Source: Azolla caroliniana (lineage: Eukaryota; Plantae; Polypodiophyta). Taken from it: a stretch of DNA of 17,421 nt. This document shows, in pieces, positions 2,431-17,421 of this stretch. Every line of letters begins with the position of its first letter. Within the stretch, counting starts at the first letter, position 1. The position numbers and the translations under genes are program-made. The notes below the pieces were generated by a model, which worked only from the letters and a program-made list of their open reading frames with translations, did no database searches and was not told the origin of the DNA. The DNA is taken from the NCBI GenBank assembly GCA_043228905.1, contig JBHGNT010000698.1:1-17421 (forward strand), in the 5' to 3' direction.

Positions 2431-3595
2431 GTGAAAACACACAATTATATTGATAAATGTGTATAAAAAACACTACTTACAATGGGTGTGACAATGGAGT
2501 ATGGTCACCCACTAACTACACTACATGGGTAGTGGAACATGTTGAATTGCCAATAGGCAAGACGAACACTCCACCAAGGAAAGAATTTCCACTTTATCCA
2601 ATAAAGAAAATTGTCACATTAGTACTCCCTTCAACTTTCGTAGATATGCTTTCACCCCATGTCTACCATCGAATACAAAAGTGTTGCGCATACTCCAATT
2701 ATGACGCAATCCCCAATATCTTAGAAATAGAAAAACAATATCCAATTTGAGAAATGTAATTCCAAATATGACAAGCAATTAGACATTGTATGAATCGATG
2801 AGTACTATCTTCCATTTGAACAGTGCAAAAGAAACAATTGCCCCTTGTTAGTCCACGACGCTTTAGAGCTAATCCCAAAGGCAATCCTCCAATCAAAACT
2901 CTCCAAATGAAGACCTTTGCTACAAGTGGCAATTTAGAATGCCAACTACGTTGTAAGATCTGCCACCACCCATGATCGGATTTGTGTATTCCCCATTCTT
3001 CTTCAGCCTTAGATGATAACCATCCAAGAGACTCGACAAAGCAATGGTACAAAATATTAGTAGTCACTTGTAACAATGACGTTTGACCCATTAAACACCA
3101 ATCAATCCACGGTTGTTCTCCTGTTTGTAGAGGTAAGGGACCTTGCATCAATGGAATATTTTGTAGTTGTTGCCAAATAAATCCAAAATTAGGTGGAATG
3201 CATAATAATTGTCGCACTTCAACAAACTCCAAAATTCTTTGAGATGGAGCCTCAACTACATCTCCTAGCTCTTTGACCCCCAAACGAAACAAACGATTAA
3301 ATTGAGAGCGCAATCTCTCCTTTCCTAGCCAACATAATAACCGAAAAGACACAATCAACTCCTTTTGCAAAGAATTACAAAGCTCTCTACTAGGTGATGG
3401 TTTCCATACAAATAACAAGAGTGCTTCTTTCCATGAGGTAACCAAGTGTTGAACACATATAGAGCTCGGAATCCTAAGTGAAATACATCCGTTCAATAAT
3501 TGCCACTATGAAGCCTTAGACGTTTTCCTCCCATGTGTTAATCCCTTGTTCTCAATGAAATATTGAACAATAGATATCCATAATTGTGAGTTTGA
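2430..3595 (-). mobile_element. 5'-truncated, degenerate L1-type LINE fragment (ORF2 C-terminus with zf-RVT/CCHC)
   Basis: ORF 2699-3496 has KVFIWRVLIGGLPLGLALKRRG...CFFC...EDSTHRFIQC...IW, the plant L1 zinc-binding motif. A shifted frame continues LRYWGLRHNWSMRNTFVFD. No RT core is present. Boundaries approximate. Confidence 0.8.
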
Positions 3596-3779: not shown

Positions 3780-4929
3780 AAACTTGTATTGTTTGTTGTT
3801 TCGTGTTTCAGTTTCTTAATTTGAAATATACAATGTATATTGTATGTACAATAATGAGCCACTTGAATGTGTGGAAAGCTGCAAATATGGCCTTGAAGTT
3901 CCTTCAAATCATAGATGGAATGAATGTGATACACGTCGCTTAGAGGAGGAAAAGTGAGCATATTATGCATTTGAGAACACATGTGATCGTGGAGATATTA
4001 AGTGTTGGGTCCTTAAGAAATACTTTTTCGACACTTTGGTAACACCGGTGCTTCTCTATGGGGTAGAAGTATGGAGTGGTAGCATCCTAAATCTACTTGG
4101 AAAGAGTTTGAAAATGTCCAAAAACATTTTCTTACAAAGTTTCTACAAGTTAAGAAACAAACGGCATACATCCTCCTCCTTGAGACAGGATCACTTCCCA
4201 TTGAGATCTTAGCCATGGAAAGGGTTGTTGAATACATGCTTAAGGTTCAAAAAATTCCCTCACATCGACTTCCAAGAATGGCATGGGAAGCATGCAAAAA
4301 GATCCAAAAGACGCATAAAAGCAAAATTTTGTGTTCTAGTTGGATGCAAGATATGAAAAAGTGGTTTGGTAAATGGGATGCAACATATTTGCTTCACGAT
4401 GTATCACTAGATTCCTCTGTAAATGAGGTCTTTTTGCAACGCCAATGTATCATGACATGGGAAAAATGTGGCGGCTCATGGTTCATACATTATACTACAC
4501 ATGTTGCACCTAACGACAAAACCATATTCTTCACGGAACGGGAAAACCGTACACATCGATACATGTTAGAGCCTAGTCCATTGGCTTCTATTCGAACCAT
4601 TGCTTCCATGCGACCTAGCTCACATGCATTGCTATGTGAGACGGGGCATTGGCGCACAAGTGATGAGAGTATTTGACTAGCACACTTTGCCCTAAACAAG
4701 TTCAAGAGTTTTGAGTATCACACTTTGATACTATGCTCTGCCTTTAATCATATTCGTCCATGCTTTCCACACATCTTCGACCAAGCCCAATCCATGCACA
4801 AATTCCTCTCACAACCAGAATGTGCACTCTCGATTGCAACATTGATTGGTAAAGTTCTTGAACATCGAGAGTTGCTACTCACTTTCACACGTATCACGTG
4901 AAATGTAATCTTTTTAGTCTCATAGGTCA
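3780..4929 (+). mobile_element. Degenerate non-LTR retrotransposon fragment (RTE/RTEX-like, post-RT C-terminus), interrupted at its 3' end
   Basis: Frame reads YYAFENTC...FDTLVTPVLLYGVEVW...ENVQKHFL...LLETGSLPI...HRLPRMAW...LLCETGHW, followed by a decayed Cys/His finger. Stops are present and the 5' boundary is approximate. Confidence 0.75.
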
Positions 4930-4965
4930 AACACATTCGCGTTCACAAGTGGAAGGATTGCGCAT
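4930..4965 (+). repeat. Left terminal inverted repeat
   Basis: AACACATTCGCGTTCACAAGTGGAAGGATTGCGCAT. Confidence 0.92.
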
Positions 4966-5977: not shown

Positions 5978-8900
5978 TTACATAGCAATCAATTCATCAA
6001 CGTCATTTTCTTCATCATCTTGTGTAGAACTGTCTTCGGCTATACGTGCATTGATTTCCCCTGTTAGCCGAGCCAACGAAATATCTTCTATAAGCTCATC
6101 ATCAAGCTCTATTAGCTCCCCCGGTTCGCCGGCTAACGGAGGAATAGGCTCTCGCGAAGCAGGTTGAAACCTTTCTGTATTGGCGAGGTTCTTTGCACCG
6201 ACCTCCTCATCCTGGTCTGGGCACTCCCACAAAGCCTTAATCCGCATATTAATAAATATAACTTGGTCCTCGTCCTTCTCCAATGCAACTGTATTTCTAA
6301 ACAGCTTCAATGCACATGCTGACGTAGTTCCTGTGATGTAAGTAACAAGAAGATTTAGTTGTCAAACGAAAAAAAAGTGATTGGTTATCTCAAGATCGTT
6401 ACCCTAGTTCGAGGAATACCTGTGCCAGAAAAGAGATCTAATATCCAGTCTCCTTCGACAGAAAACATCTCGATCAAGCGCATCATAAGTCGTTGAGGTT
6501 TTTGGTATGGGTTGACAAGTCCCCATTCTGTCGTGGTGACATGTCGCAATTTCCGAGTCACTGCTGGATATACGAACAGATTTGAACCTCCCACTTCATT
6601 AGAATGCTCTTTGATTCTCTGTTTCTTAATTTCATCGAAGTAGCCAACCGTTATGTATTCAATGGCATTAACGAACCGAAAAGTTGGCCCTCTATTTACA
6701 TTGGTCTTGATCCTATAAAAAATAATACATCCAGTTAAGAATAGATTCAACAACCTTAAGAAATGCAATATAGTGAAAGACACCTATAAATAATCCTTAC
6801 CATGCAAGGTTCTCGATGCCATGGCAACGAGATCTCAAAGCTTGAGCTACCGAGTACCCTTGGTCCATACTATGAAAGACAACTATTCGCCACAAGGATG
6901 CGGTCGTTAGCTCAGCGAAATCCTTGACCATCTTCTCCAATTGTTTAAACCTAAACGGTTCATCGTCGTATGATGACCCCGCCATTCGAAATCCGTAAGG
7001 AATATCCGCAATCATTAGCGTATATTCCTTCTTTGGCACCTTCTGGATCAAGTCGATGACATCACCGCAAACCACATTGTAGTAAAGATCTCTTGTAATA
7101 TCTTTTTTGTGGCTAAATTTTTTAAAGGAGCCATCTTCCTCCATTTCGTACGCCTTGACTAAGCGACGATCCTTTTCTTTTCTGGCTCGTTCGAGATGTG
7201 CAAGGAAGGATGTAGGGAAATCGTGTATATCCTTAACTTCTCCTTGTTTCTTGCCTCGACACGGTTTCTAATAGAAGCAATAGGACATCAGGTATTATTA
7301 TACAAGATCTACATATGATGAAAGGGTAATGAAAAAACATGAATACTAACCCAATCCTTGAATGCAATAAAATACTCTGATAACGCCTTATACGAAGACG
7401 TTAGAGGATAATCCTCGGTCACTTGTTCCCAAGTTATACATCCAAGTTGTTTCATCATAACTTCTTGGATCTTCATGTACACCTTATGACTGTAAAATTA
7501 GAAATCAAGATTAGAACTTTGAATTACACTAGATAGACTACAATTTCAGTATTTGAGGGACTTACTTATTGAACTCAGTGACCATTTCTTCAAGGCTTCA
7601 ATCTTTCGCCACAACCCTTGACAAAACCGACACAAGAAGCTGTTCGTCCTTAATACCTTGCATCGCTCTCCATAGAGACAGCTTCATGTCATCTGCCGCT
7701 TCTTCAATTGTCAAGTCAATTTTCTTGGCGGCTTGTGACTTTAACTCTAGTTGAGGGTCAACCCTACATTTCTTTTGTCGTTGACCCTTTACCTCCTTAT
7801 TCTCCCACATTGAGAAGATTTGATCTTGTAGGTCCCATACTTCTCCATCTCTAAACGCCAATTGAAACCAAGACTCATACTTTCGAAGAACATCGGACCT
7901 AACATTATCATCTACCACAATGCCGACTTCATGCAGACATTGACGTCGAAGGCCTGGATGTAACTTCACACCAAACTTTTGTTTCACATCTAAATACTCG
8001 TGGTGGAAGAACCGTATACGCTCAATGGACGACATTTTCTGCCTATAGTCATTATCATTATTATGGTCCCATGCCAACAGCTTAGCCTCTTCGGTTGTGA
8101 GGCCAACATAAATTTTGCACTCGGCATACTTGAAGAAGAAAGTGGTTGGATGTTCTCTCACAAGTTGCCGACGTGCCTCTGCTGAATGCGATCCACCAAT
8201 GACAAAATAATTATATTGATCATGTTTTCTAATATCAAAATCTTCAATGGTTTCACATTCTTCAGGATCTACCATAACAATAAAAGGCACCACAGTGGCA
8301 TGAGGATTAATTTTCATTTTTTTCTTGAGATTTTGAACATGCATGCAGTGAGGCTCTCTAATCTCAAGTGGTCTTCGACCTGTTTTTTCATCAATAGGGG
8401 GCCGATGGATGTGTGTTATAGGCAAATTAAATACTTGCCCTTTCTTGACCAGCTTCCGTTGCATTAACTCTCTCCTTATTTTATTCTGCTCGGATGACAA
8501 AACACCCGAGGCCAACTCAGCTCCTGGCGTCCCCTTATTATCCTCCTCTTCGTTTTCACTTGTTGAATCCGTATCCGACATTTTCGTTGTCTTCTTCTTT
8601 GCTGGTCTTGACTGGACTTTGGAAACCTTTTTTGTTGGCTTCAATGGGGAGGGCACTTCATCTCTTAGAGTTACATGGTCTTGTATAGAAGGCCTCAAGG
8701 TAACAATAAGGTTTTGTGAGCTATCAAGTGCTTTTTTGAACACTTCTGGCCCACAAGATTCTTTTACTAAAAGGTCTTCTGAAAGGAACACTTTACGTAC
8801 CCCCTTGGAGCACTCTATCATTACCAGTATGTTGGCCGAATCTGCATCTTCGTAGTCAAATCGTAGAATACGGCCATACATAAATGGGGTTTCCTTTCCA

Positions 8901-10190
8901 AGTTGCCCCTCACCCTTCTTCTTTGCTGTATACAATACGACTTTTTTCTTTGAGTCGACATATTGCATACACCATTCCTTGTCCATTAGATCTCGGTCAG
9001 GAAGGTCTTCACCTCTAGTAGCGGCGACAAGTTTCTTTTGGCTAACATCACTATGTGGCTGAGATTTTGTCTCTTCGTTAAAGAGAAGCTTTTATCCTCT
9101 CTTCATGGTCTCAGGAGCTACCTTGGTCTGGGCTTCGATTGGAGAACCTTGTATGCGAAGCTTTATTTTCTTCACCGGTCGGTCCGACAGGTTTTCAAAC
9201 GACCTATTTAAGAAAGTATATGCAAAAACATAAGTTAGGTAGTCACGTAGATTAAGGTTGTATATTAACATGAAGAACAGTTCCCAGGAGCATTCCTATA
9301 TTCAAAAATCTATTATAGGTAGGGCTATTCAACCTAGAAAATATATATCGTAATAAGTAAAAAGGGTTATATATTCTTTTAAATAGTAGGTATGACTTAT
9401 ATAGATTCCAAACCTATATTGACGAGAATTTGCTATCGTAAAGGCAATTTGTGGATCATTTTCTACTATTTTAAGCTAAAGTAGGTCATAAAACACCTAT
9501 AATTAGAGCATGTTTTTTTTTAAAAGTAAGGAAAGCCAACATAAAAAGATTGATTTTGCCAGACAATTTGATAACTTTTCCATCCCAAAATTATTTGTTA
9601 CCCCAAAAATACAATTTTTCTCTCTCAAAGCCTTCTTATATACAGGAACTCGATACGGCGTATCGAGTTCGTATTTAAAACCTAAACTTTAAACAGGAAC
9701 TCGATACGGCGTATCGAGTTCCTGTTTAAAATTCAAATTTTAAATAGGAACTCGATACGCCGTAACGAGTTCGTGTTTAAAGTGTAGGTTTTAAACACGA
9801 ACTCGATACGGCGTATCGAGTTCCTATTTGAAACCTACACTTTAAACAGGAACTCGATACGCCGTATCGAGTTCCTGTCTAAAACCTACACTTTAAACAT
9901 GATCTCGATACGGCGTATCGAGTTCCTGTTTAAAACCTACACTTTAAACAGGAACTCGATACGCCGGTTTTAAACAGGAACTCGATACGGCGTATCGAGT
10001 TCCTGTATAAAAAGCAAAATTAAATTATGAACTCGATACGCCGTATCGAGTTCATGTATAAATATTTGTATTGTATACATGAACTCGATACGGCGTATCG
10101 AGTTCTTGAGAAACGAAACATATTTACAAAAATGTCCACAGTGTCAGAGGCCTACCTGGAGTCCTCACGCTCGATTCTCTTTGAAGACAT
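5978..10190 (-). pseudogene. Six-exon ParB/Srx-like domain + beta-class N6-adenine/N4-cytosine DNA methyltransferase fusion (about 974 codons, two in-frame stops)
   Basis: Exons 10190-10156, 9203-7566, 7489-7351, 7267-6801, 6712-6420, 6330-5978. All five introns are GT..AG with matching phases, total 2925 nt. The spliced product has FVIGGSHSAEARRQL...EAKLLAWDHN (ParB-like), then GDVIDL, IADIPYG (motif IV), LAWIK, NPYQKPQRLMMRLIEMFSVEGDWILDLFSGTGTT (motifs X-I) and ALEKD. Stops: TAA 9092-9094, TGA 7598-7600. Confidence 0.85.
9646..10105. repeat. Array of 25-bp palindromes GAACTCGATACG(G/C)CGTATCGAGTTC at 51-bp period, inside intron 1 of the methyltransferase gene
   Basis: Full cores start at 9646, 9697, 9748, 9799, 9850, 9901, 9978, 10029 and 10081, with a half core at 9952. 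AT-rich linkers often extend the palindrome (TTTAAACAG...CTGTTTAAA). Confidence 0.95.
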
Positions 10191-10235: not shown

Positions 10236-10298
10236 TGTGCTCTATGTGCTTTGTGTGCTCTGTGTGCTCTGTGTGCTCTATACGCTCTGTACGCTCTG
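10236..10298. repeat. 10-bp tandem repeat (TGTGTGCTCT-like) in the predicted 5' UTR of the methyltransferase gene
   Basis: About 6 degenerate units between the TATA box and the ATG at 10190. Confidence 0.7.
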
Positions 10299-10324: not shown

Positions 10325-10332
10325 TATTTATA
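10325..10332 (-). promoter_or_regulatory. TATA box for the ParB-methyltransferase gene
   Basis: CCTATAAATAGG on the minus strand, 135 nt upstream of the predicted ATG. Confidence 0.65.
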
Positions 10333-11033: not shown

Positions 11034-13886
11034 ATGAGTGAAGATTCACCGTTCTCGATTGAAGAATATTGTTTGTCATCAGACCCATCGTTTTCTACTG
11101 AAGAGTATTGTTTGTCATCAGAGTCACCATATTCGATTGAAGAATATTGTCTGTCGACCGACTCACCATATTCTATCGAAGAATATTGTCTGAGCTCATC
11201 TACAGGGAATGTAAATAATGACACATGTGAAGAGTTCTCTATTGAAGAATACGATATTAATAAAGATACCGAGAATGAAGGAAGTGCCCAGGAAACATTG
11301 AATAACATTGGCGATGGTCACAGCAAAGAATTAGACTGTAACAAGGTTACACCAACCTCTATGCAGGAAGAGAAATCTGGGAGCCCTATGCATATTAGAA
11401 GAATCCCACGAAGAATTCGTCTAACTAGATTTAGCTTGGTGACATCAGATAAACAGATTGGATTTGATGTCAACAAAATATGTTGTGCCCGTGGTTGTAT
11501 GTCTATGATTGGAAAATGAAAGTTGCGAGAATTAAGGCGATACTATTTTTCGATGACCGGTGATGAGCAAGACACTTACCTCGGGTCACATATGCAACTA
11601 GTATCTGACAAATGTACGGGGATCAAAGTATCATTCGAGTATTATATCTTCCATGCGCAACAGATATGTAGAGTTGCATTCAAAATTGCGTTATGTGTTA
11701 GTAACATGCGGCTACATAGAGTACAACAACGTCTACTTAACGGGGATCAGATGCTCAATTGTAAAGAGGTTCCAAGTATGAAAGGTGCAATTGGAAGACT
11801 AGCTATTGGTTGGATGAAAACTTACTTTCAGTTAAATTGTGAAGTAATGCCCACTACAGGTAGGATGCATCTTTCTGATAATTATACACGTCGGGAAGTT
11901 TATGATGCCTATCGATCTGATATGCTGGGCTCACGTAATAAATCGATCACATATAGCCAATTCACAAGATTATGGAGAGCTCAGTTTTCAAATGTTATTA
12001 TTCCTCGTAAAGTACGTATGGGGTATTGCTCCATTTGTGCAAATCTTAAAAGTTTGGCTAAAGGTGCAAAGACATCAATGGAAAAGGATACGAGTAAGAA
12101 GTTACTACAAGAGCATCGTGAGGCACAATCCTTAGAACGAAGGAAGGCGATGCATCATAGAGAGAAGTGTTTGAAGAGGCCCGAACAATACATGTGCTTA
12201 ATGATAGATGACATGGACCAGAAGAAGACATGCTTGCCGCATATGCGGAGGCTCCCCAAAGATGTCAATGATGAGTGCCTTGTTCAAATGCACTTGGTGG
12301 GATGCTTGGCTTATAATAGGTCTGTTCGACCTCACGTCTTCATTACTTACCCCAATGTTCACAATGACCCTAACCTAACAGTTACAGTGATTCACCGAGT
12401 TTTGATGTCTTGGGGACAACCTTTCCCCCCTGTTCTATACATTCAATTGGACAATACTGCTAGAGAGAACAAAAATTCAACTGTATTTGGCTATCTAAGT
12501 ATGTTGGTCAACCTAGAATTGTTTAGGAAAGTGAAAGTCAATTTCCTTTTGGTTGGCCACACACATGACCATATAGATAAGATGTTTAGCACATTCTCCA
12601 GACAGTTGTCTCGGCATGATGCTTTCACTTTACCTAAACTATTTGATGTCATTTGTGATGCTTATACACCACGCCCAAAAGTGTTACACTTGAAGGAGGT
12701 ATATGACTTTAAGAGATATATATTAGATGGGGGTGGTGGGAATGTTAAAGTGCTTGCTCAGTTAAACAATATAAGTTTCAATCACATTTTTTTGATAAAG
12801 AAAAATGGAATAAGTGGTTCTACACTTTTGTATGCCAAACAATATTCATCTTCTACAACATGGGAACCTGAAGGTGGTTGCCAGTTATTACTTTGTATGC
12901 CGAGTACAATTGTCCATGGAGCTAAGCAAATGCCAATTGAGAAGAAAGGACAGTTGCAGAGCGACTTGGTATCAGAACAAAAACGGTCATGGCTCCAAGC
13001 CTTAGAAGAAAAAAGAAAGCATATTGAGGCCGCCAAGAAATATGCCGCACAACAAGACACGTCATGGTGGGATGTATTTTATAGTGATCAGAAAGAAATT
13101 ATAGACAATTGTGTATCTGTTGATAATTGGAATTTGGAAACGCCATTCACATGGTCGTTGCAACATGATTGCGTAAATAGAAGTCCGGAGCAACTAGTAA
13201 ATGCGATTAATGACAGTGTGGTCCATCCACAACAAAGAGACATTTATGTGGGACCAAGGATGACCAAAGTAGCCGAAGCTAGATGGCAAGGAAATTTGCA
13301 AGAGCTCACCGCGGGGATGTTGATTGCAACGCTGGCTGATGAGAACTCACATGGCCACCAATTTTGGGTTGGTAAAATTCTAGAAGTGCTAATGCATGAA
13401 ATAGAAAACACGATCAAGTCTATAAATGTTCATTGGTACAACACTAGAACTGCAAATGCTTTTACAGGTAAGTATACATTGGAGATGATTGAATGCCAAA
13501 CAAGAAGGGGAGGTAGGAAGAGGAAGCGAACCATTCGTAACACCTCGACCCTTGATATCTCTGATGTGGATATCATCGTGTACGACTTCACACTTACAAA
13601 AGCCGGACGATTAAGGAAGTCAACAATAGATATAATAAAAGAAAAATTACTAGGTCTACAAGGTGGCTCGAGTCAAAGGCAAACGAGATCTGCTACATAT
13701 AATCTAGAGTCAAACCATTTGGTTTATGACGAAGATAATGCACTGATTGGTACATCCGAAATGATGAGGAGGATTCGTAATTGTATATTAGTTATAGTAG
13801 TGATTCTCCGTAAAGGAGTGATCATGAATGTATATTTGGCTATTAAGTGTAACTACATTCCGCTTGTAACAAATCGAGTAATATAA
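11034..13886 (+). pseudogene. Sola/DUF7869-like DDD transposase (about 950 codons) split by one in-frame TGA
   Basis: ORFs 11034-11519 and 11523-13886 share a frame across TGA 11517-11519. Motifs: CC..GC and C...F N-terminal Cys cluster, YSQFTRLW...CSIC...H, IDDMDQ (12204-12221), QLDNTARENKN (from 12444), FLLVGHTHDHIDKMFS (about 12543-12590). Located between TIRs with a 4-bp TSD. Confidence 0.82.
11043..11198 (+). repeat. Four 39-bp coding repeats (DSPYSIEEYCLSS-like) at the transposase N-terminus
   Basis: DSPFSIEEYCLSS / DPSFSTEEYCLSS / ESPYSIEEYCLST / DSPYSIEEYCLSS, plus a partial FSIEEY downstream. Confidence 0.85.
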
Positions 13887-14135: not shown

Positions 14136-14171
14136 ATGCGCGATCCTTCCACTTGTGAACGCGAACGTGTT
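14136..14171 (-). repeat. Right terminal inverted repeat
   Basis: Reverse complement is AACACGTTCGCGTTCACAAGTGGAAGGATCGCGCAT. Confidence 0.92.
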
Positions 14172-14199
14172 GTCATATTTGACCTTTGAAGACGATAAT

Positions 14200-15402: not shown

Positions 15403-16814
15403 CTACTCCACTACTGCTACTACTTCAGGTGCAGGGAGAGAAGGAAGGCGGAGCTGCTGAGCGGGAGTCGGGAGCGGAAGGCTTCGGAGCACGACACTCT
15501 CACATGTGAGACCCGGCCCGAATCCTAGCAACACACCCCATTCATGCCCCTCCCCGGTCGTGGCCGCGCCCCTCGACACGGAAGTCCGTCGCACTTGATC
15601 CAATATGAAGAGCACACACGCACTCGACATGTTGCCGTACTGATCCAGCACATGCCGGCTCGCTGCCAGCTTCTCCTTGTTTAAGCCCAGCTTCAGCTCC
15701 ACCTGGTCTAGGATGGCCGGGCCTCCAGGGTGTGCCACCCAGAACACGTCATTGTATCTTGGGAGGGCATCCCCTGACGATGATGCACCAAACACTTGAG
15801 CGAAGGCGCTTTCAAGGACCCTGCCTATGTTCTTGGAGATGATGGTGGGCACGTCCTTGAGGAGGTGGAACGTGAGGCCCACCTCGCGCAAGTGGCCATC
15901 AATGGCACCGTCACTATCCGGCATGATCTCGGAGCCTGTCCAGTGCAACTCGAACCAGGGTGTTTCCACCTCTGCCACTGGGTCTGCACCCACGATGACG
16001 GCGGACGCACCATCACCGAACAGGGCTTGGCCCACCAGGCTGTCCAGATGCGTGTCACTGGGACCTCGGAATGTGACGGCGGTGATCTCGCTGCATACAA
16101 CCAGGACGCGGGCGCCCTTGTTGTTCTCAGCCAGGTCTTTGGCTATGCGGAGCACGGTGCCACCGCCATAGCATCCGATCTGGTAGAGCATGAGGCGCTT
16201 GACGGAGCTACGCAGGCCGAGGAGCTTAGTGAGCGCCCAATCAGCACCAGGCATGTCGACCCCGGCAGTGGTGCAGAAGACGAGATGAGTTATCTTGGAT
16301 TTGGGCTGCCCCCACTCCTTGATGGCCCTGGCCGCCGCCTCCTTGGCGAGCTTGGGGACCTCGACCACCACGATGTCCTGACGCACGTCCAACGACTTCT
16401 CCCAGTAGCCGCAGATGCTGGGGTTGGCACGAAGGATCTCCTCGTTCAGGTGGAGGTGCCGCTTCGTGATGCATGACTTCTCGCCTGCAGAAAGTATGTA
16501 ATATAAATGGCACAAACTCGGAAGTTACGGTTGTTCCTCCTCCATTTAAATGGGATACATACTAAGTAAGAGGTGACATGATGGTTTGGGGGTGGGGTGG
16601 TTCTTATACATACATACAACAGTTACTTACACATGCGCTTGAACTTGTGCTTGAGCTCTGTCTGGTGGTTGCTTTTGGTGATGTCGAAGTAGAAATCGGG
16701 GTAATCCTTTTGGAGGAAGACGTTGGGCGGGACGGCCGTACCGATGGCGAGCACGGTGGCAGGGCCATCCGAACGCTCCACGATCCGCCTAGTATGAGCT
16801 CCAAGGGAAGCCAT
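15403..16814 (-). CDS. CHS: Chalcone synthase-family type III polyketide synthase, copy 2 (complete, 421 aa; exon 1 16814-16631, exon 2 16484-15403)
   Basis: 146-bp GT..AG intron (16630-16485) splits the Cys codon. Catalytic Cys (QIGCYGG), His (AHPGG) and Asn (GNMSSAC) are present, with gatekeeper Phe residues (ALFGDG, GLTFHL) and the GFGPG loop. Confidence 0.96.
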
Positions 16815-16963
16815 TGTTAGTAATAACTATGTGAGATGCCTTTTGTGCGTGCGTGTGCGTGCGTGTGTAGCTATGGCTGTGATGTGATGTTGGTAGCAGT
16901 AGATGCCTTTGTGTGTGTTATGTGCTCTATCTATCGTTTGTTTTCGAAGAGCAGGTTTTGGGT

Positions 16964-16971
16964 TATTTATA
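16964..16971 (-). promoter_or_regulatory. TATA box of CHS copy 2
   Basis: TATAAATA on the minus strand, homologous to 1366-1373. Confidence 0.65.
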
Positions 16972-17421
16972 GTAGTTCATGTACAGCCTTCTACTTATGA
17001 GGTTTTAGTCGCCAATTTTCTAGAAGCCCTTGACCGCACCCTCCTTTTGAAATCAAAGTGTTGGAATGTTTTAATTTTCAATACTCCACATTCCGATTAA
17101 ATGCATAATCCTTTTTTCCCTTCGTCTTTGACATCAATTTCCCTTACCATCTTGCACCATCCTCGTTTTAATTATCGTTTGTGTGCTTAAAGTTATTGGG
17201 CCATGGACATGAGAAACTCAACCCATCTCAAACTAAAGCAACCTATTTCAATGGTTGGGCTGGGGTCCATTCCTTCGAGTATTTTTTAACTAACACTTAT
17301 GAGTACAAGAGAAAGGATTTGTGGAGTGTACTTTGCTTGACTACACAAATTTATCATGATCAACAGAGTGTTGAAAAACGAGTTGAAAAATCACCACTAT
17401 ACAAAAACATGGTTGTACCTC

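Follow-up and report, generated by a model that had tools for sequence, protein, structure and literature searches.

A ParB-like/methyltransferase fusion gene as the probable cargo of a DUF7869 transposon in the fern Azolla caroliniana

Introduction

Why does a contig of the fern Azolla caroliniana carry exons of a DNA methyltransferase of prokaryotic type, and to what kind of gene do these exons belong? We analysed the contig JBHGNT010000698.1 (17,421 nt, forward strand), which is called the window here and to which all coordinates refer. The exons very probably belong to an accessory gene with six exons, carried by a DUF7869 transposon of 9.2 kb which lies between fern chalcone synthase genes, and the two parts of the gene product, a ParB/sulfiredoxin (Srx)-like half and a beta-class methyltransferase domain, are both of prokaryotic or phage type. 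The original prediction, made from the sequence of the window, had described the methyltransferase domain as standing alone. This was too narrow, as the domain is the C-terminal part of a ParB/Srx-like–methyltransferase fusion gene carried as cargo by a transposon with terminal inverted repeats (TIRs). The question has a wider bearing because the genuineness of N6-methyladenine (6mA) and N4-methylcytosine (4mC) in land plants and the identity of their writers are disputed, and a conserved, selected methyltransferase which is fused to a ParB-like binder and borne by an abundant family of fern transposons, with relatives in Ginkgo and Chara, is a candidate writer.

Materials and methods

Database searches of the window gene were run exon by exon, and stretches divided by an in-frame stop served as independent queries. 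With the N-terminal open reading frame (ORF) of the ParB-like/methyltransferase gene of the window as a query, 33 relatives were retrieved; the comparison loci L001–L008 are contigs encoding six of them. The family profile was made from alignment A3, in which the window exons were entered as separate rows. The fold of the methyltransferase part was modelled with AlphaFold2 on the Adiantum homologue P0062, whose alignment included the window exons.

Results

The methyltransferase domain

Exons 4–6 (Table 1) are predicted to encode a beta-class, N6_N4-type DNA amino-methyltransferase domain, and we regard this assignment as sound because profile matches and the matches of the P0062 fold to solved enzymes both point to it. 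Exon 5 alone matched PF01555 (N6_N4_Mtase) with 31.5 bits (E 2.1e-7), above the Pfam gathering score of 26.7 bits, which agrees with the family named in the original prediction. The same exon matched PHROG 67 ‘DNA methyltransferase’ (E 7.4e-8) and, in phmmer searches, fern, Ginkgo and Chara proteins. Exons 4 and 6 searched alone gave no significant match in Pfam, NCBIfam or PHROGs. The NCBIfam CcrM model was matched by exons 4, 5 and 6 at positions 5–41, 183–216 and 218–260, respectively, each time weakly and in colinear order; the junction of exons 5 and 6 corresponds to the step from position 216 to position 218 of the model. The homologues P0059 and P0062 span positions 5–219 of the 221 positions of PF01555.

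The conserved motifs follow one another as DIPYGF in exon 4, NPYQKP, and DLFSGTG, which is shared by exons 5 and 6 and split by the second intron of the domain. DIPY thus precedes FSGTG, in the permuted order of the beta class that had been proposed, and NPYQKP aligns with HPTQKP of M.RsrI and CcrM. Exon 4 is conserved end to end in L001–L006, and its motif IV region aligns to that of M.MboIIA via the family profile. When this profile was compared with solved structures, the N6-adenine enzymes M.MboIIA (E 9.8e-15, spanning motif IV through motif I), CcrM (3e-12), DpnA (4e-12) and M.RsrI (2e-11) were matched, as were the N4-cytosine enzymes Adineta N4CMT (7e-5) and M.PvuII (8e-4). Single exons run with phmmer against PDB sequences gave no significant match; the family profile alone produced these matches. 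The P0062 model (mean predicted local distance difference test score (pLDDT) 77, predicted template modelling score 0.76) retrieved in Foldseek CcrM (9.5e-15), M.BceJIV, M.RsrI, M.MboIIA and M1.HpyAVI, with E values ranging from 1e-14 to 1e-12.

Motif IV departs from the canonical (D/N/S)-P-P-(Y/F/W), as the family keeps the Asp, the second Pro and the Tyr and replaces the first Pro. All seven loci (the window and six related ones) have D-I-P-Y, 20 Adiantum proteins have D-A-P-Y, and the Chara sequences have D-F/L-P-Y. NPYQKP and FxGxG are kept across the family, with occasional degenerate copies.

Exon–intron structure

The ParB-like/methyltransferase gene is predicted to consist of six exons, of which exons 4–6 make up the methyltransferase domain. 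The coordinates and GT-AG sites proposed for these three exons in the original prediction were found as claimed (Table 1), and so was the interruption of conserved motifs by the introns, at LAW/IK and FSGTG/TT (slashes mark junctions). The borders of the 88-nt intron read AAC CTT GCA TG/gtaagg ... tatag/G ATC AAG, the Trp codon being restored on joining, and those of the 89-nt intron read GGC ACA G/gtattc ... cacag/GA ACT ACG. The in-frame translations of exons 4–6 are open, as had also been stated, yet two stops are present further upstream in the same gene.

The junctions are supported by other copies. In the contigs of the related loci, exons 3–6 aligned end to end with the window and were separated by introns of 68–113 nt, each bounded by GT..AG; exon boundaries, phases and GT-AG sites are identical in L001–L006. 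Nucleotide identity between the window and L003 is 77–82% in the exons and about 40% in the introns, which amounts to unalignable sequence. In Adiantum nelumboides, Ginkgo biloba and Ceratopteris richardii, the annotated proteins, which are spliced, continue across the junctions with the motifs W-x-K-x-N, F-x-G-x-G-T-T, FNN/HKVY and F[KR]D[WY]/KP. The intron positions, conserved as they are inside the catalytic motifs, show how completely a gene of prokaryotic type has become adapted to expression in eukaryotes.

A 9-nt unit, TGTGCTCTG on the plus strand, occurs as seven tandem copies at 10236–10298, directly downstream of the TATA-like box, where the 5′ leader of the methyltransferase gene is presumed to lie.

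Table 1 Features of the transposon and of its ParB-like/methyltransferase gene in the window
Feature	Position	Strand	Remarks
Left TIR, 36 nt	4930–4965	+	Target site duplication (TSD) GTCA at 4926–4929
Exon 6: motif I end, remaining core (ALKLFRN..ALEKD), acidic C-terminal tail	5978–6330	-	TAA at 5980–5978
Intron, 89 nt, phase 1	6331–6419	-	GT..AG; within FSGTG/TT; position kept in L002, L003, L005, L006
Exon 5: central/target-recognition part, NPYQKP, motif I start (DLFSGT-G)	6420–6712	-	PF01555, phrog_67 and phmmer matches
Intron, 88 nt, phase 2	6713–6800	-	GT..AG; within LAW/IK; position kept in five other loci
Exon 4: linker and N-terminal half of methyltransferase domain	6801–7267	-	Motif IV D-I-P-Y-G-F; last 2 bases begin Trp codon
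Intron between exons 3 and 4	7268–7350	-	
Exon 3: 46 codons + 1 base	7351–7489	-	In frame with exon 4; junctions match annotated Ceratopteris protein P0019
Intron between exons 2 and 3	7490–7565	-	
Exon 2: N-terminal region	7566–9203	-	ParB/sulfiredoxin-like domain at about 7925–8449; two in-frame stops
Intron 1, 952 nt	9204–10155	-	Inferred from sequence
Palindrome array, ~10 units, 51-nt period, core TCGATAC-N4-GTATCGA	9585–10108		In intron 1, between the two genes
Exon 1 (tentative), ATG at 10190	10156–10190	-	Inferred from sequence; TATA-like box near 10330 upstream
DUF7869 transposase gene	11034–13886	+	PF25273 E 5.9e-51; divergent from methyltransferase gene
Right TIR, 36 nt, 94% complementary to left	14136–14171	-	TSD GTCA at 14172–14175

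The ParB-like N-terminal half

The N-terminal half of the protein is predicted by structure modelling to have a ParB/Srx-like fold and to belong to the same protein as the methyltransferase. The AlphaFold model of the residues encoded by 8449–7601 reached pLDDT 70–90 over residues 1–130, and its top Foldseek matches were exclusively Noc, ParB, Srx, PadC and KorB (E 1e-5 to 1e-3). By sequence, the N-terminal pieces of 462 and 497 aa had no significant match in Pfam, NCBIfam or PHROGs, and DUF6551 was matched weakly by 6 of the 26 family members. That one reading frame runs on from exon 2 to exon 6 was deduced from the relatives. The Chara braunii protein P0095 (1825 aa) contains the ParB-like and methyltransferase unit twice in succession, with D-F-P-Y and D-L-P-Y, respectively; it is probably the product of a gene model that fused two adjacent element genes, or else of a true tandem duplication.

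Conservation and distribution

Across exons 4–6, the proportion of synonymous differences (pS) is 0.76–0.9, which means that these sites are saturated. The comparison of the window with L003 over the same exons gave a proportion of nonsynonymous differences (pN) of 0.063 with a pS of 0.76 (pN/pS about 0.08), and that with L001, the closest relative found, gave an omega (dN/dS) of 0.03–0.07 at a dS of 0.6–1.3. Low pN/pS, low omega and the kept motifs show that the methyltransferase domain of this family has long been maintained by selection. Relatives are present in Adiantum, Ceratopteris, Ginkgo and Chara, with dozens of paralogues in Adiantum. The saturation of synonymous sites and the occurrence in ferns, Ginkgo and Chara are in agreement with the earlier suggestion that a domain of prokaryotic type has long been resident in eukaryotes. 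The best prokaryote-like matches of the family profile were stand-alone or helix-turn-helix-fused methylases (E 1e-17 and weaker), and no prokaryotic donor with a ParB fusion was found in a profile search that was limited by word matching and length.

L006, L007 and L008 represent one element contig found in the European Nucleotide Archive assemblies ERZ1034427, ERZ1034429 and ERZ1034435, which are filed as metagenomes. The coverage of this contig (80–111x) lies far above that of the neighbouring contigs of the series, which suggests that the samples contain plant DNA with a high-copy element.

The transposon and the decay of its copy in the window

The gene is enclosed by TIRs flanked by a 4-bp TSD, which delimit an element of 9.2 kb (Table 1). 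It is arranged head to head with the transposase gene, and the same pair was found in L002, L004, L005, L006 and L008. An array with a 51-nt period and the same TCGATAC...GTATCGA core as in the window is present at the same place in L002. The element is a cut-and-paste DNA transposon, probably of Sola1 type; a TSD of 4 bp fits Sola. At 11042–11192, a 39-nt coding repeat is present in 3.5 copies, so that the transposase begins with a series of S-x-EEY-C-L-S-S peptide repeats; the intact transposase of L004 has similar ones.

The copy in the window is dead. Exon 2 contains the in-frame stops TAA (9094–9092) and TGA (7600–7598), where P0001 and P0002, two relatives, have KKG-E/K-K and AKE-L-SLEEM, respectively. 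Since the relatives have E/K and L there, both stops are nonsense mutations of the window copy. They lie upstream of the methyltransferase exons and therefore preclude synthesis of the methyltransferase domain within the complete protein. A further nonsense codon, the in-frame TGA at 11517–11519, is present in the transposase, whose sequence on both sides of this stop aligns colinearly with an intact ORF of 915 aa in L004.

The element is flanked by two tandem chalcone synthase copies (1–1770 and 15652–17421), which are about 95% identical and 15.6 kb apart. Both are GC-rich, have upstream and downstream regions, and are open in frame as far as the window extends; the closest named chalcone synthases are those of the ferns Lindsaea, Adiantum and Odontosoria (77–78%). 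Thus, one insertion has placed the element in the spacer which separates the two tandem chalcone synthase copies. Outside the element, an ORF of 265 aa on the minus strand (2699–3496), in which a zf-RVT domain was recognised (E 1.7e-11), probably represents part of a retrotransposon lacking long terminal repeats (non-LTR), and a near-perfect hairpin at 2086–2213, with 59-nt arms 98% complementary and a 10-nt loop, could be a foldback element or one resembling a miniature inverted-repeat transposable element (MITE).

Discussion

The origin of the gene

The prokaryotic type of the domain might be taken as a sign of bacterial or phage contamination, or of a chance pattern of ORFs. The probability of this is practically negligible, given that the gene has GT-AG introns conserved in position and is flanked on the same contig by fern chalcone synthase genes, and that none of the 63 phmmer matches at E<=0.001 was prokaryotic. 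The deep conservation, the low dN/dS and the annotated models in Adiantum, Ceratopteris and Ginkgo would also fit a horizontally acquired host gene, domesticated or never mobile, which merely adjoins a transposase, as the original prediction had implied. We consider this very improbable, as the gene is enclosed by TIRs with a TSD, is always paired with a DUF7869 transposase in unrelated contigs and has dozens of paralogues in Adiantum, and as nonsense mutations have struck both genes of the window copy.

Several points weigh against the reading of the gene as a transposon-borne ParB-like methyltransferase. The fold evidence is a proxy taken from the Adiantum homologue P0062, which is 40% identical to the window protein, and the model of the N-terminal half is only moderately confident (pLDDT 60 overall). 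No ParB domain was detected by sequence in Pfam, ParBc being found in 0 of the 26 family members. A search of two RNA runs, selected by species label, yielded no contig with the gene sequence, and splicing and expression rest on comparison. The assignment to Sola1 is putative and draws on DUF7869 and the 4-bp TSD. Both the binding to the palindromes and the identity of the methylated base are conjectural. Finally, Ile or Ala occupies the place where nearly all DNA amino-methyltransferases have the first Pro of motif IV, and because of this replacement catalysis is not assured.

Target and activity of the methyltransferase domain

Adenine N6 is plausibly the likeliest target of methylation by intact copies, because motif IV contains Asp and the profile is closer to N6-adenine enzymes. 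An N4-cytosine methyltransferase, comparable to Marchantia DN4MT1 and bdelloid N4CMT, appears unlikely. PF01555 includes both specificities, the Foldseek E value for Adineta N4CMT (3e-12) is near those for the N6-adenine enzymes, and the authors of the Ectocarpus study likewise left the choice between 4mC and 6mA open (PMC12477816). However, motif IV begins with Asp and not with Ser, whereas MpDN4MT1 has TSPPY, and the family profile favours N6-adenine enzymes over N4CMT and M.PvuII by 5 to 10 orders of magnitude. A close kinship to Marchantia DN4MT1 was rejected on the motif (TSPPY against DIPY). We likewise give little credence to a catalytically inert or RNA-directed domain retained for regulation or nucleic-acid binding, a role that has been proposed for the methyltransferase-like domain of DIRS1. 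The non-canonical D-[I/A/L/F]-P-Y, whose fourth position is occasionally H or R (Ginkgo, one Logan contig), speaks for it, as does the argument of Iyer et al. (PMC4738411) that the methyltransferase-like domains of DIRS1 are inactive. On the other side, Asp, Pro-Tyr, NPYQKP and FxGxG are all retained under strong purifying selection. Moreover, rRNA methyltransferases of the Erm/KsgA type modify adenine N6 with the motif N-[I/L]-P-Y, and catalysis is thus compatible with a hydrophobic residue in second place.

A possible mode of action

Bacterial ParB, Noc and KorB bind parS-like sites. In intact copies of the fern element, the protein would be made from the promoter facing the transposase, the ParB-like domain would bring it to the palindrome array of the element, and the methyltransferase would modify nearby DNA on exocyclic amino groups, most likely at adenine N6. 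The mark might then modulate the expression or transposition of the element itself or let it escape silencing by the host. Another possible role is to link transposition with replication, comparable to that of Dam in IS10 and Tn5. It is a tentative proposal, which we hold to be possible although rather doubtful, that intact members are active in ferns, Ginkgo and Chara and deposit 6mA (or 4mC) on nuclear DNA, starting from the palindrome arrays of their own elements. If true, a land-plant transposon would possess a self-marking epigenetic device which shields it from silencing or times its transposition, and the family would genuinely contribute amino-methylated bases to the genomes of land plants. 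The copy in the window adds little by itself, being dead.

Comparison with known systems

A literature search returned no description of this element from a fern or another land plant, and none for the term ‘DUF7869’. A 2026 preprint on retrotransposons carrying DAM was set aside, as it deals with another methyltransferase family and with retroelements. The original prediction had called enzymes of this class rare in eukaryotes, which understates their occurrence, as transposon-borne ParB-like/methyltransferase genes are found in brown, green and red algae (PMC12477816; PMC4738411).

The solved N6-adenine enzymes M.MboIIA (1g60), CcrM (6pbd), M.RsrI (1eg2), M1.HpyAVI (5hek) and M.BceJIV (8urk) share with the fern domain the order motif IV, target-recognition region, xPxQKP and FxGxG, and the predicted fold is alike. 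Identity to them is 13–21%, and the fern family has D-I-P-Y in place of D-P-P-Y. Whereas these enzymes belong to restriction-modification or cell-cycle systems, the fern gene contains introns, joins the domain to a ParB/Srx-like part and resides on a eukaryotic transposon. MpDN4MT1a/b and N4CMT are, like the fern family, eukaryotic members of PF01555 of prokaryotic origin. They are, however, host genes with TSPPY/SPPY and a demonstrated 4mC activity (PMC8885841), while the fern proteins have D-x-P-Y and a ParB-like domain, lack the (T)SPPY/F motif and are encoded by transposon cargo.

The fern gene belongs, as a representative from land plants, to a class of transposon accessory genes which has come to be known only lately. 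The giant DNA transposon Sola1-1_Ec32 of the brown alga Ectocarpus (Genome Biol 2025, PMC12477816) is described as carrying a ParB-like/DNA-methyltransferase gene on the strand opposite to the transposase, and its authors proposed that the product binds and marks its own transposon. An accessory gene inside the transposon, on the strand opposite to the transposase, is likewise found in the window and five other loci. The algal element measures 21.5 kb, as compared with 9.2 kb for the fern element, whose family is spread among streptophytes (ferns, Ginkgo, Chara), and the passages on the algal element mention no palindrome array; the likeness to the fern protein is one of description. ParB-HTH/Dam-like fusions associated with transposons have been reported from chlorophytes (Iyer et al., PMC4738411), and these enzymes belong to another, Dam/DpnM-like methyltransferase clade. 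The accessory genes PAG2 and PAG3 of the Plavaka elements in the red alga Bostrychia (bioRxiv 2025.02.11.637652) combine a ParB-type domain with DNA-modifying enzymes on a transposon. As in the fern element, tandem inverted repeats adjoin the gene encoding ParB, but the adenine methylase (with SET) and ParB (with a 2-oxoglutarate (2OG) oxygenase) reside on separate proteins. The fern family thus extends to land plants the algal theme of transposons which carry their own DNA-modifying enzymes.

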